Assembly: GCA_965644295.1 (NCBI GenBank)
Contig: CBFFRP010000410.1
Span: 124,001-188,000, forward strand
DNA length: 64,000 bases
DNA from: Paraphysomonas bandaiensis
Lineage: Eukaryota > Protista > Chrysophyceae
Reading direction: 5' to 3'
Shown here: positions 44,901 through 51,435 of the stretch, piece after piece
How the letters are laid out: every line of letters begins with the position of its first letter
How positions within the stretch are numbered: the stretch's first letter is position 1
Translations under genes and position numbers: made by a program
The notes under the pieces: model-generated
The model's input: only the letters and a program-made list of their open reading frames with translations
Database searches by the model: none
Told to the model about the DNA's origin: nothing

Positions 44901-45312
44901 CTACGGTGGTATTACAAGATTTCATAGACCGTTGTCCAATTTGTCAAAAACTTAATGCGGGTATAAGTGTATCTTAATTCTTAATCTAAGTAATATCCGA
45001 GCTGCCAGGTCAATGTTTGAAAATACTATAAATTTTCTAACCAATTGTTTTTTTCTCTGAATTGTAACAATGTCAATAGTACCGTAGAGTTGTAAAAAAG
45101 TGATATTCTCGTTGTGCTTTACAGTTCCAATATTTAGATGTAATGGAAGCTCAAGCCTTGCTTTGTACTTTGTACACACGCAACATGATATGTGTGGCTG
45201 CTTATTATTACTTAACTGATACCTGATATTCATATATATGCAAACACGACTAGTACACGACATCGCTTAAAACTAACAGCACTATTGGATGGAGAAATCC
45301 CGTGTATTAACA

Positions 45313-47988
45313 CTATTTGGTCAATCGTCTCGGTGATCCTTTTGAATGAGGAGTCGACGGCATTGCACCTTTCTGCTTAAAGTGTACTTGGTGCACCCAA
45401 TGACTAGAATGTAGTTCACAGATTTCTGTGGAGAGTACATCAGATTGTATGTTCTGAATTACCTTTTCTATTTCTCTGTACGACCATCGCTCGCTGCTTC
45501 GAGCAAACAGCGCCAGACAACCAAATAAATTAAAATTTCTTCTTTCTCTTGCGGATTGCGATTCATCGCCGGTTTGCTTTTTAGCTTTTACCTTTTTCGT
45601 TTGTTCGCGAGCGGGTGGAATATCTGTCTCTGGCGATAGTTCCGCAAATTCGACACAATCAAGACATAAGTCGTCCGCTGCTACTGTGCTACCCGTAGAA
45701 ACTTCCAAAAATTTCCTGACAGCTTCGTTTGAGCTGTTGGCAAGATACTCACAATCTTCACGCCCATAGTACATATCGATTGTCTTCAACATTGTTTGCG
45801 TATTATTATCCATGTAGGTACTCAGGAGCCGTACAGCACACCTAACTACGCACTGTAGTCTCAAATGTGCATCTGGTAGGCCCATACTTACAATACGATC
45901 CATCCTACCATGACAATGACACAAGGGAAAGTGCTATGAAAGAACACACCTGTCTAACAGCGCAGCGTCGAGTTTATCTACTGTCATACTGGTGGTAATA
46001 ATTACCGCAAGTGATGGGTTACCCACTCGAAGTCTATCTAGCAACAGGTGAATACATTCGAATCCGTTGATAGTGCCTGCTACTTCATTATCTGCATCGT
46101 GAGAGACCACTTCTGCGTTGTCCGCGCGCCACCGCGAGGCAATGATTGCATCAGCTTCATCAATAATAACAATAAAGCCTCGGCCAGAGTTGGCAGTGGC
46201 TGCAGAGTCAAGAATATCTCTGAGGAACGAGCCCGAAGTGGAAGTAACAGAAAGGCCAAGGGGTCCAGTAGTTCGTGATGAAGAAAGAATATCGGCACCG
46301 CACACGACAACATACGGTAGCCCAGACTGCTTCGCTATACACTCTGCCCCCATGGTCTTCCCCTACGGTACGTATATATTGAGTCACGTATCGCGAAATG
46401 TACAGATATATGTACCGTGCCAGGTGGCCCTGTAAGTAGCACATTCATGAGAGGCATTCGACGGGCCGGTCCAGGGTATGTGGACTGCGTACGTCGAAGC
46501 ACTGGAGAGGCTTTCGCACAGAAGGAGTATGCGTGAGATACCGCCACCAGCCTCTCCCGAATCTCACGCGAGAGAACCATGTCTTGTAACGAATCTGCCC
46601 CCACCTCCATCCCTTTCTTTGCGTGTCTTATCGGTTTTGGCGGTAACAGCTTCTTAAGAATGTAGAATCGCATCGCCTATAACAACACGGGTCACACAAG
46701 AGTTAACGCTGTCCATTTGATCTACTTGCCTGTACAGTCTCAGTAATGACAACATACGACGACAGAAGTGCTGCAAATATTAAAGAGTATGTAAATACTT
46801 CGAACGGCTGTCGAATCGCATGTTCGAGCATCATAGACATCTGCCCTTGGAAAGAGACGACGATTTCTTCGAAATTCTTGCGCATACTCTCCGCTGCAAC
46901 ACACATATCCATTACGACAGCACAAACACAATAAGAGTTTATACCTTTCGCAGCCATGATGTTTCTCATTACATCTTCGTTCTCATGTGCCAGACGGCTT
47001 TCCTCTGCGAAAAGAACAGGAGTTACACCTCATCTTAAAGCACACAATTCCCAATTACCTTCTGCACGATATAAAATAGCTCTAACCGACATGTTGATGT
47101 CCAGCTTCAACCTCTCTTCCTCTTCTCGTTGAGCAGCCTGCAGTATATCTCGCTGTGTAGCTGCCCGATCTTCTTCAGCGGATCGCACAAGCATCAGCAT
47201 CTCTGTTCTTGTTGATCGCTACTTCACACTGTTAGCTATCTACACTGCTAAACTCATACTCAACTGTACCTCTAGCTCGGCCAGTCGGGTGTTCTGGTCA
47301 TCTTTAGCCTGAATAATATCCGTATGATGTTCATCTAATGCTTTCTTCTTATCCTACAATTTAAATTTACCCTGCATCATTAGCTAACTCTAATCTATCC
47401 ACAAACCTCGTATTTGCTTCTAATATTCCGCAGCTTGAGGGCTAAACGTTTCTGAGTGTTCTCTATCTTTTTGTCAATATTTCCGAGCTTTACCTGGTAA
47501 ACATTCCTAGCTGCAGCAATCTCAGAAGCTGTTCGCCATTCTCTACCAGTTTCATTGGCAATCCGGAGAACTTTTAATGCAAAATTGTTCCTTTCTTCTC
47601 TCAATGCACTCAGAAGATTATTAATATGTTGAAATTTCTCAGCAAGAAATTTCGTTACCGAAAAAACATGCATAAAAAGAGCAGGATGATCAACAGTTGT
47701 TATATTTAACATTTTCGATGCACCATTTTCAGTTGATTTAATAAGACTGTGAGATGTTAAGTGTGGGTATGTCGACTTAATTCTATCGCCTAATATCCCT
47801 ATACGATACTCGCCTTTATTGACATCCCAATAAGTGTGTACAGAGATTCCTCTGATGATTGAAAGACTCTCTGTGATGTTAGCATCATCTATAATGTTAT
47901 ATACACTCCAATCTGGCTGTAGTTTAATAGTAGAGGCATGTATATATGAGATCACGAGATTGAGGAATAGAAGACGAGTTAGAGGCAT
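45313..47988 (-). CDS. ATAD3-like AAA+ ATPase with N-terminal signal peptide and S74/ICA-like domain
   Basis: Coiled coil, one TM (FTYSLIFAALLSSYVVI), MNVLLTGPPGT|GKTM (intron inside Walker A), SGLPYVVVCGAD, IIDEADA (Walker B), LDAALLDR|MD, WSYREIEK. Multi-exon. Confidence 0.85.
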
Positions 47989-48363
47989 TTGATTGGGTAG
48001 ATGAGAGGGTTGTGGATAAGGGAAAGAGGTAATGGTGATATCTGTCAAGGGAGAAGAGGGATTGAGGTATGTGGGAGTAGATAGAGGGGTGTGTTTAAGA
48101 GTGAGGTGATGGAACTATGCATGTATATATGGGGTGTTGTGTACTTAACGATTTGGTTTGTTCTGTACTTATAAGTGTATATATAATGCAGTACTTATAG
48201 AGAGAGGTGTGAGGAGATTGGTGTACAATGTACTCATACACTCAATATATATGTATGTATGAAGCTATCCATAAGTACATTGGAGTTACGCTGTATGACA
48301 GTACATATGATTGCAACATACTTCTGTACCTATCGATCGAGATGTATATGTGACTGTACATTC

Positions 48364-48486
48364 ATACATACATACATACATACATACATACATACATACA
48401 TACATACATACATACATACATACATACATACATACATACATACATACATACATACATACATACATACATACATACATACATACATC
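48364..48486. repeat. (ACAT)n microsatellite
   Basis: Direct observation. Confidence 0.97.
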
Positions 48487-48693
48487 CACAACCCTCTACC
48501 GGTACGTACGTATCCTCATCCAGCCATGTAACTGATCAGTTTGACTCGTATTTTTGTCTATGTATACATACATACACATACATGCATACCATGCACGTTA
48601 ACTGCCATATATACATATATATAAACCTCACATACATACATTAAACATTCTACATTGCAATCATACAGCCAGAAGACATCGATAATTATCATC

Positions 48694-51435
48694 ATGGCAG
48701 ATGAGAATAATCAAGATAATGCAGAGAGTAGACCAGTGAGTCCAGGGGAGGGATATGATACAGAGGAATCAGAGGATGAGTTCTTTGAGGATCCTGTTGA
48801 TGTTATTAAAGATTTTGGAGCTCATCCATTAATGGAAAGAGCTCAGAAAGCACTTGTTGCACAGTTGAAAGAAGCTCAATCAAGAGTATCAAGCGATTTA
48901 TATGATAAAGAAGAAGAAATCAAGAGATTGACATTACAAAGAGAGACAATCGGTGTCGATCTGTATAACCTTCAGCAACAACTGGCTAAACTACAAGTGT
49001 CTTTAGAAAACAGTCATAATGAATACAATGGTATTGTTGATGCCAAGTTACAGGAGGAAGAACTTCTTCAGTCTATTTCTGGTAATAATAAAGAACAGCA
49101 GGCACGATACGAGGAGCATCGCAAACAGCATACCAAATATGCGAGTGAGCTAGAGGCACTGAACGAGACACTTCGCCAGATCGAGGCATATAATGCTGAA
49201 GTTAAATCAGAAATTGCAATGACGAGGCGGGCAACTTATAAGGCTGAACAAAGCATGCAGAGTTTGGAAAAACACAAATCGATGCAGGATATGTACGTTG
49301 ACAAACTAACCAAGCAAGTAAAAACCCTTCAAGAACAAATTGCTCTGCATGCTGGGCAGATAGAGGCACAGCGGAACGAAACCTTAGAAGCGAATGGTGT
49401 GTTCCAAGACACAGTCAGGGAACTAGAGCTTATTGCACACGAGAAAAAACAACTGATGACTCAGTGGAAGGCAGCCCTTGCTGGGCTCAGTCGTCGAGAT
49501 GAAGCTCTCGCCCAAGCATCACAGACACTCGCCACAGCAGAGCGAGCGGTGCACGATTATGATGTAGAACTTGAGACGATGAGGCGAAATATTCAGAATG
49601 AGCAGGGCAAGCATGAATCACTGGTGCATGTGAAGGATCGACTGGAGAGCGAGCTTCAGTGGGTGGAGGAAAATCTGGTCAAGATAAGAGCGGAGAGGGA
49701 GCAGCTACAGGAGCGGTTCGGACTTCTAACGAAGTCGCTCGCTCAGACCGATGGAGAGGCGAAAAAGCTCGGCGCAATCGCGAAAACTCTCACTGCAGAT
49801 TCTGAATCACTGCTGCAGAATCTTCAAGTAGTGACACGAGAAAGACAGCGCATGGAGGAAGAAATGCAGGCGTCGAAGAGCACCCACTCGAACGTGAATA
49901 AAGCCGTCGAAAATCTGTTGAAGAAGCAGGCAAAAGTTATGAAGAGTATTCACGATCTTGAAAATGAAGGGATTGATGTTAATAACGATATCGCTAGAAC
50001 TAAGGTTGACAGTCTGAATGCTGGTATGCTCAACGACCAACTCAGAGACCAGTTGTCTACTAATGCCAAAGAGTTCAGTGAGAAGGAGGCACTCATAGAT
50101 AAGTACCAGGTTGAGATCCGCCAGAGGCACGATGAGGTAGAGAAGAAGATGTACCGGGTGGACCGATTAAACAAAAAGTACGACAAGATGGTTGAGGCTT
50201 CAGGAGGAGAAGAGAATCTGGGCCCTCTTGAAAATACTGTGAAGAACCTAGAGAAAGAAATGGAAACGGTTTCTAACGAGTGCAAAGAATTGGAGCGTGA
50301 GTGGCTAAAGAGACAAACAGAAATGGTTGCTATCACCGCAAAATCCGAAGAAATATCTGAAGCCAATCACGAACTACAGGCCCGAGTGACTATTCTGACA
50401 CAGCAGCAGCTGCGTCTCACGAAGGATCTTCGCATCCTTACAAGTGAGGTCAAGGCAGCCAACCATAGTAACACAGACCTGCAGAAGGATGTTGCTAAAC
50501 TTAATGTGCTCATTAGTCAAAACCAGGACCAGGAAGGGGCTCTGCAGAACGAAAACTACGTATTGGAGATGGAATGCGTGGAGGAACTGAAAGAGATGGA
50601 AAAGGAAAGCGTTGCCCTGCAGGCGACAGTGAATGAGACCAAGAGTTCGAAAGCAGCTATTCTTGATGAAATAATGGATACTGAAAGACAAGCGCTTCTC
50701 TGGGAAAAGAAAATCCAGTTGGACAAAGAAACAAGGGCAGCACTGGACCCAACTGTAGGACAGGCGGAAACTCAAAACATGGAGCGTGAGATCCACAGAA
50801 TGGAACTAAGGTTAGAGGCATTAAAAAGAGAGCAGGAGCGTCTGTCCATTGAGCTAGAGAGGGCGATTAATAAGAGATCAGCGATAGCGACACGTTTCAA
50901 AGGGAGCAAAACTACCGATACAGACAAACCCGTTGCCGTTGCGAAGAAACAAGCAACCAAGGAGCTCACGCAGGCTGGGATGAAAAAACGCATATCTGCA
51001 CTGAAAAAAGAGGCCCGCGCGTTGTCAAACGAGACCTCGCAGTACACAGGGGCAATCGAGGAGAGAAAGGCTCAGTTCTCTGAAATGACATCGGAATTAG
51101 AGCGAGTTACAACCCAGCACAGTAACATGGAAGAAGAAAACCGTCAACTACAGAACGAAATAAACGACCTGTTATATCAAAAACAATTGAACCAGGAAAG
51201 AATATCCTACCGCCAAAAGTTCGTAAAACGCTTACGTGAGTACTCTGCACAAGGAATTGATGTTTCTCTTACTCTGCAAACACAACGCCGTTTGTTGGCA
51301 GCGTCGCAGGCCCTCGACAACGTCAAGGAAATTGTCACAGATTTGAAGAGTTCTAGTCCGCATTTATCTGATGTTTTGGATCGTGTTATGGCAATGACAG
51401 ATCCAGGTATTGATTTAGGAGGAGTGGAAATGTAG
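48694..51435 (+). CDS. CCDC40: Coiled-coil domain-containing protein 40 (axonemal 96-nm ruler)
   Basis: Intronless, about 913 aa. HPLMERAQKAL, ETIGVDLYNLQQQLAKLQ, TRRATYKAE, QDMYVDKL, EENLGPLE, LLWEKKIQL, MEREIHRMELR. Confidence 0.9.
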   Translation: MADENNQDNAESRPVSPGEGYDTEESEDEFFEDPVDVIKDFGAHPLMERAQKALVAQLKEAQSRVSSDLYDKEEEIKRLTLQRETIGVDLYNLQQQLAKLQVSLENSHNEYNGIVDAKLQEEELLQSISGNNKEQQARYEEHRKQHTKYASELEALNETLRQIEAYNAEVKSEIAMTRRATYKAEQSMQSLEKHKSMQDMYVDKLTKQVKTLQEQIALHAGQIEAQRNETLEANGVFQDTVRELELIAHEKKQLMTQWKAALAGLSRRDEALAQASQTLATAERAVHDYDVELETMRRNIQNEQGKHESLVHVKDRLESELQWVEENLVKIRAEREQLQERFGLLTKSLAQTDGEAKKLGAIAKTLTADSESLLQNLQVVTRERQRMEEEMQASKSTHSNVNKAVENLLKKQAKVMKSIHDLENEGIDVNNDIARTKVDSLNAGMLNDQLRDQLSTNAKEFSEKEALIDKYQVEIRQRHDEVEKKMYRVDRLNKKYDKMVEASGGEENLGPLENTVKNLEKEMETVSNECKELEREWLKRQTEMVAITAKSEEISEANHELQARVTILTQQQLRLTKDLRILTSEVKAANHSNTDLQKDVAKLNVLISQNQDQEGALQNENYVLEMECVEELKEMEKESVALQATVNETKSSKAAILDEIMDTERQALLWEKKIQLDKETRAALDPTVGQAETQNMEREIHRMELRLEALKREQERLSIELERAINKRSAIATRFKGSKTTDTDKPVAVAKKQATKELTQAGMKKRISALKKEARALSNETSQYTGAIEERKAQFSEMTSELERVTTQHSNMEEENRQLQNEINDLLYQKQLNQERISYRQKFVKRLREYSAQGIDVSLTLQTQRRLLAASQALDNVKEIVTDLKSSSPHLSDVLDRVMAMTDPGIDLGGVEM

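Follow-up and report, generated by a model that had tools for sequence, protein, structure and literature searches.

We describe a gene in a stretch of 64,000 nucleotides (nt) of DNA from the chrysophyte Paraphysomonas bandaiensis, referred to throughout as the window (contig CBFFRP010000410.1 of assembly GCA_965644295.1, positions 124,001 to 188,000 of the forward strand). The gene occupies window positions 45313-47988 on the minus strand, is expressed, and consists of eight exons and seven introns that encode a protein of 771 amino acids (aa). The protein begins with a signal-peptide-like segment (aa 1-19; 47932-47988). This is followed by a ‘cap’ that resembles the intramolecular chaperone domain known as ICA, or Peptidase_S74 (aa 20-133; 47590-47931), by a long helical stalk, by a single transmembrane helix (aa 326-347; 46739-46804) and, finally, by an AAA module of the ATAD3 type. 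An earlier, sequence-only reading of this locus proposed just such a fusion, with the chaperone domain catalytically dead. The residues that it quoted are present in the sequence at the coordinates it gave, and at the level of sequence its principal proposal is supported.

The reading frame runs from an ATG at 47988 to a stop codon at 45313-45315. Exon 1 (47407-47988; 194 codons, with a GT donor at 47406/47405) encodes the signal-like segment, the cap and, in its remainder (47407-47589), the start of the stalk, which in the structural models continues the last, C-terminal helix of the cap. The stalk extends through exon 2 (47270-47353), exon 3 (47059-47218) and exon 4 (46945-47004), and ends in exon 5 (46728-46893), which also carries the membrane helix; transcript junctions define these five exons. 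Exon 6 (46416-46674) encodes a basic juxtamembrane linker and the first half of Walker A (G-P-P-G-T); exon 7 (45950-46362) the second half (G-K-T), Walker B (I-V-I-I-D-E; 46156-46173) and the AAA core; and exon 8 (45313-45904) the end of the core (L-L-D-R), the lid helices, a disordered insert, the motif W-S-Y-R-E-I (45469-45486) and the stop. Together the exons measure 2316 nt, equal to 771 aa plus the stop. Six introns are of the GT-AG type and intron 5 (46675-46727) is GC-AG; intron 6 (46363-46415) is the one that cuts Walker A in two. Transcript contigs from two separate runs cover the gene. One (X1; 2498 nt) spans 45250-48077 and shares its organism label with DNA runs that hold the unspliced locus; the other (X4; 2513 nt, three base differences) reaches 48093. 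All seven introns (45-54 nt) are spliced out of both, and the 5' untranslated region that they contain (47989-48093) has no upstream ATG. Four junctions, including that between exons 1 and 2, were seen independently in a polyA metatranscriptome (X5), and a DNA run (X18) yielded the unspliced form with zero junctions. The earlier assignment of exon 47407-47988 to the same transcript as the AAA exons is thus borne out by X1 and X4, which span the whole gene, and by the exon 1/exon 2 junction in X5. A chimera or an artefact of the gene model was considered and rejected: transcripts cross the entire gene, and a paralogue on contig C32, described below, is a single uninterrupted open reading frame (ORF). 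The database protein P0072, the 771-aa ORF of a 2543-nt contig, matches the window translation except at one residue (Ser84 to Thr), and this, rather than exons of the window that we joined ourselves, was the full-length protein used for searches and folding. A second database entry, P0001, is the product of an MMETSP1103 transcript labelled Paraphysomonas; it is 5'-truncated, and its first 92 residues are missing.

Searched alone against Pfam and PDB sequences, exon 1 matches nothing meaningful. An exhaustive HMMER search with exon 1 returned 71 proteins with E below 1e-3, most of them 550-900 aa in length with the cap match at residues ~20-125, and in each of the relatives tested (10/10) PF00004 lies further along. 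The family amounts to ~70 sequence clusters, mostly from anonymous environmental contigs, and few carry names. The names are Paraphysomonas, Mallomonas, an ochromonad, Chrysoparadoxa and an undescribed MMETSP strain; every relative that can be identified is an ochrophyte. Database labels for the named relatives are ‘hypothetical’ or ‘unnamed’ protein, and two partial cluster members are labelled generic AAA ATPase. A word-index protein search with the cap region retrieved the gene's own product only, and with the full-length alignment it was swamped by generic AAA proteins. The literature that we searched contains no description of a signal, an ICA cap and an ATAD3-type AAA module in one protein. 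The domain architecture is new, combining two modules that are each known, and the family is unstudied.

ICA domains are self-removing folding caps at the C-terminal end of fibres, in phages and in MYRF. Residues ~20-133 of the window protein are homologous to them: profile comparison, hhalign, Foldseek and VIA-align all agree in confirming the homology that had been proposed. Because searches with a single sequence see nothing, the homology becomes visible only with a family profile, and we built one (A1) from the cap domains of 50 relatives. Against PDB sequences, A1 finds the ICA domain of MyRF (7dc3) at E 1.3e-8 and the L-shaped tail fibre of phage T5, with its chaperone, at E 0.0019. Among the same 50 relatives, the curated Pfam models give a few matches, all below cut-off (PF13884 in 3/50, best 0.0016; PF13887 in 2/50). 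The P. bandaiensis genome has S74 domains of its own. There are 11 matches to PF13884, of which 10 pass the family cut-off; they lie inside very large open frames and keep the motif S-D-R-R-L/I-K. A1 recovers their places at E 3e-7 to 2e-6, and hhalign of A1 against six of these domains gives a probability of 95.7% (E 1e-8). Such domains could plausibly have given rise to the cap. The AlphaFold model of the window cap has a mean predicted local distance difference test score of 94.6, and when it is searched against the PDB with Foldseek, the best 13 matches are all ICA/CIMCD structures (7dc3, 3gw6, 3gud and 4uw8; probability 1.00). VIA-align superimposes 110 residues on 7dc3 (Z 8.4; root-mean-square deviation 3.6), placing model residues 8-118 on MyRF 587-705, and gives Z values of 6.4 for 3gud, 6.3 for 3gw6 and 4.9 for 4uw8. 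Features from a language model point to S74 clusters too, with scores that serve as a lead only. As a separate observation on the S74 domains of this genome, contig C616 (101260-165201; L016-L020 and L024-L028) contains an open frame reported as 34,637 aa, with at least five Peptidase_S74 domains. In two of these the S-D-R/E-R-I-K motif is intact and a MYRF-like helix is present, and the frame may encode a giant fibre polyprotein that cleaves itself internally.

The MYRF ICA domain (7dc3; PF13887/PF13884) is the best match to the cap by profile and by structure. The two share the order of secondary-structure elements, the long final helix, which forms a trimeric coiled coil in MyRF, and a membrane helix downstream. 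Unlike MYRF, the window protein lacks the Ser-Lys dyad, an upstream β-helix and the NDT80 DNA-binding domain; its cap is N-terminal and would be luminal, whereas the ICA domain of MYRF is cytosolic and releases a transcription factor. Membership of the MYRF family was rejected on these grounds: only a signal-like segment lies upstream of the cap, and no Pfam match of the NDT80 type was found. The chaperones of phage tailspikes and tail fibres (endoNF, 3gw6; GA-1, 3gud; T5 pb1, 4uw8/8hqz) have the same fold (Z 4.9-6.4). They stand at the C-terminus of fibres, keep S-D-x-R-x-K and are cut off after folding; the genome's own S74 domains keep the motif as well and would share the other two traits. 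The window cap, unlike them, is N-terminal and, to judge from its sequence, is left uncut and retained. It begins 5-10 residues past the signal-like segment in nearly all members of the family, with neither fibre nor β-helix upstream.

MyRF is cleaved between P586 and S587, and either S587A or K592A abolishes cleavage (PMC8326128). For trimerisation its ICA domain relies chiefly on the C-terminal triple coiled coil (PMC8326128). When the cap family is aligned jointly with true S74 domains, the S-D-x-R-x-K columns fall on the family motif x-D/N-W-S-x-F/Y. Pro25 then occupies the place of the catalytic Ser in the window protein, and Tyr30 that of the catalytic Lys. This reproduces the loss of the dyad, with Pro and Tyr in its stead, that had been read from the sequence alone, and structural superposition fits: model residue 8 (Pro25) lies on MyRF 587 and residue 7 on endoNF 910, the same register as in the alignment. 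Throughout the family the Lys column is F or Y (50/50 members), the Ser column is mostly P, A, I or V (Ser itself in 3/50), and the Asp column, next to the former nucleophile, is D or N in 45/50. None of the alternative registers of this segment yields a Ser-Lys pair.

Beyond the cap, the stalk, membrane helix and AAA module derive, as profile and tree comparisons indicate, from ATAD3. ATAD3 (ATAD3A/B; PF12037 + PF00004) is an AAA+ protein of the mitochondrial inner membrane, and its parts follow the same order as those of the window protein: long coiled coil, one membrane helix, basic linker, AAA, and a lid with G/Y-R-E-I. A hidden Markov model (HMM) of the family, comprising 678 positions and built without the conservative C32 paralogue, matches a green-algal ATAD3 with 215 bits in one stretch (HMM 129-677, from the coiled coil to the C-terminus), and the genome's own ATAD3, likewise as a single domain, with 176 bits. 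For other AAA proteins the score does not exceed 69 bits, and the match covers the core alone (positions ~423-580). In a tree of AAA cores, ATAD3 and the capped family form a clade against FtsH-type outgroups (SH-aLRT 99), which agrees with the HMM scores in upholding the ATAD3-like character first ascribed to the module. Within that clade, the C32 paralogue and the Chrysoparadoxa protein group with canonical ATAD3 (97), and the window gene belongs to a group of 33 that evolve fast (support 92). The tree contains three canonical ATAD3 sequences and six outgroups and was made by a quick method, and the order of evolutionary events that it suggests is tentative. P0001, which lacks no more than the first 92 residues, matches PF00004 at 4.7e-20 and has no match to PF12037 at E 0.01. 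A search of PDB sequences with the AAA exon alone gave nothing at 1e-3. Walker A (G-P-P-G-T-G-K-T, residue 433) and Walker B (I-V-I-I-D-E, residue 501) are both intact in the window copy, and the L-L-D-R arginine, invariant across the family, is present. The lid motif W-S-Y-R-E-I (residue 715) corresponds to F-S-G-R-E-I of ATAD3, and the disordered insert spans residues 663-687. The model of the full-length protein shows the cap, one unbroken helix from 154 to 323, the membrane helix and an AAA fold. Unlike ATAD3, the window protein starts with a signal-peptide-like segment and an ICA-like cap where ATAD3 has its own N-terminus. In its P0001 form it falls short of PF12037, its AAA core carries inserts, it evolves fast and it is probably not mitochondrial.

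The same genome holds both canonical ATAD3 and an intermediate form. Two near-identical canonical genes, at C406:207846-208937 and C394:136975-138069 (L007 and L008), contain at least one intron each and could be haplotigs or the result of a recent duplication. Both ORFs have the usual N-terminus, with neither signal-like start nor cap, in keeping with what the sequence-only reading had said of canonical ATAD3. The C32 paralogue (L005:3414-5489, minus strand) is a single-exon gene for a protein of 692 aa, with a signal-like start, a cap, ATAD3_N and AAA. Its cap is 28% identical to exon 1 (E 1e-5), is dead and ICA-like, and bears an N-C-T sequon at a place where sequons recur in the family. 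It matches PF12037 at 1.3e-13 and PF00004 at 1e-24; its AAA module is well conserved and of the ATAD3 type, and the protein is 38% identical to canonical ATAD3. In evolutionary terms this paralogue stands between canonical ATAD3 and the gene of the window, and the genome provides a series of three steps, from canonical ATAD3 by way of this conservative capped paralogue to the divergent capped gene. A short, weak match to the cap (E 0.03; residues 29-77) also occurs on contig C243 (23455-23601; L003), interrupted by a TAG; it may be a fragment of a third, decayed capped gene, or chance.

In the first 19 residues of the window protein, a short n-region that contains one Arg precedes a hydrophobic core of 11 residues, and the small residues H-A-S follow. 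Nearly all full-length relatives likewise begin with a short, hydrophobic N-terminus that carries 0-1 positive charges and ends in small residues, and the signal-peptide-like start noted in the window protein is conserved across the family. In the cap, sequons (N-x-S/T) recur at two set places, which are N37 and N95 in the window protein. Family-wide, and with counts that are phylogenetically non-independent, 107 sequons were observed on the N-side of the membrane helix, where shuffling predicts 64, and 72 on the C-side, where it predicts 74. The 22 residues that follow the membrane helix include seven K or R and zero D or E. Because of the signal-like N-termini, the enrichment of sequons on the N-side and this positive-inside bias, we consider the protein to be probably of type I and located in the secretory pathway, with the cap in the lumen and the ATPase in the cytosol. 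A complex plastid, which had been suggested as another home, is unlikely: no transit-peptide-like stretch follows the signal. Plastid targeting was rejected, there being neither such an extension nor a conserved aromatic residue after the signal.

Our preferred explanation, to which as a whole we give a probability of about 65%, is that the gene belongs to an ochrophyte family of membrane AAA+ proteins that arose from a duplicate of ATAD3, with a signal peptide and a non-catalytic ICA domain taking the place of the original N-terminus. On this explanation the signal peptide would send the N-terminus into the endoplasmic reticulum (ER), giving a single-pass protein of type I. Its cap and a helical stalk of ~220 residues would face the lumen or the cell exterior, and the AAA module would be cytosolic. 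The cap would no longer cut, and, preceded by no more than the signal peptide and a few residues, it would have nothing to release. It may keep the other function of ICA domains, trimerising by way of its C-terminal helix and setting the register of a parallel, three-stranded stalk, by analogy with its relatives. Two such trimers could feed one AAA hexamer. ATP turnover in the cytosol might then be coupled to a tether or binding head in the lumen, much as ATAD3 bridges two mitochondrial membranes. Several points weigh against this reading. Ancestry in ATAD3 by default predicts mitochondria, and the sequon counts come from related, non-independent sequences. The window domain itself has zero matches to curated PF13884 and PF13887 up to E 10, and the statistically supported part of the hhalign alignment does not extend to the dyad segment. 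The symmetry of a trimeric cap would not match that of a hexameric ATPase, and Walker B is degenerate in several relatives, so that ATP hydrolysis may be dispensable for the family.

The chief alternative as to location is that the protein is still mitochondrial: its helix would span the inner membrane, its AAA module would face the matrix, and its cap and stalk would project into the intermembrane space. In that case the hydrophobic N-terminus would be an outer-membrane anchor or sorting signal, and the cap would strengthen the bridge between inner and outer membranes. Descent from ATAD3 over the full length past the cap fits this, as does the 38% identity of the C32 paralogue to canonical ATAD3, and the positive-inside rule predicts the same relative orientation. 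The N-termini, however, are brief hydrophobic segments with 0-1 positive charges, unlike amphipathic presequences and of insufficient length for bipartite signals. Sequons, moreover, are enriched and fixed in position on the N-side only, the genome retains separate canonical ATAD3, and the S74 domains found elsewhere in this organism were counted as belonging to putative secreted fibres. For these reasons we regard a mitochondrial location as unlikely, and the secretory pathway as the better home for the capped protein.

Other alternatives concern activity. The family could be mainly a structural scaffold, in which the AAA module is a nucleotide-binding platform for oligomerisation with little or no hydrolysis. 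The window gene is in a fast-evolving clade, and some relatives have D-N or D-G at Walker B and long inserts in the AAA core; only G-x-G-K-S/T of Walker A is conserved family-wide, and, by eye, neither the ATAD3 sequences nor the window protein has an aromatic pore-loop motif between Walker A and Walker B. The window copy, on the other hand, has a canonical Walker A (G-P-P-G-T-G-K-T), the D-E of Walker B, the L-L-D-R arginine and the R-E-I motif, and a mainly structural role strikes us as quite improbable. That the cap might still cleave itself with a non-canonical nucleophile (e.g. the Ser of D-W-S), trimming the N-terminus after assembly, is harder still to credit. Retention of Asp or Asn beside the former nucleophile in 45/50 members, and of the Ser two residues further on in 29/50, would suit such a reaction. 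Against it, Lys is found at its column in no member, the D-W-S Ser is replaced in 21/50, K592A by itself abolishes MyRF cleavage (PMC8326128), and the signal peptide plus about 5-10 residues upstream of the cap offer no cargo for release. A more specialised version of the preferred reading, in which a duplicate of ATAD3 acquired a signal peptide and a dead cap, is a long shot: the protein might be a secretory-pathway machine specific to organisms that make self-cleaving S74 fibres, whose dead luminal cap recognises, or co-assembles with, the ICA domains of the giant secreted fibre proteins putatively encoded in this genome, or their released caps, and whose cytosolic ATPase drives sorting, quality control or disposal. 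If so, a descendant of ATAD3 would have been re-targeted from mitochondria to the ER, and would be the first client-specific partner for ICA-assisted fibre assembly in eukaryotes.

To our knowledge, reports of ATAD3 have so far placed it in mitochondria only. If a paralogous family does carry secretion-type signals and luminal glycosylation sites, it would represent an organelle AAA+ scaffold re-targeted to another membrane system. An ICA domain kept without its dyad, N-terminal to a coiled-coil stalk, suggests in turn that evolution has reused the domain purely as a trimerisation head.

The flank of the capped gene has a feature of its own. A long tetranucleotide microsatellite, which reads in translation as repeated T-Y-I-H / C-M-Y-V, occupies window 48260-48535. 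It sits in the ~700-nt gap between the capped gene and a divergent ORF on the plus strand (48655-51435) that encodes a coiled-coil protein of 926 aa.

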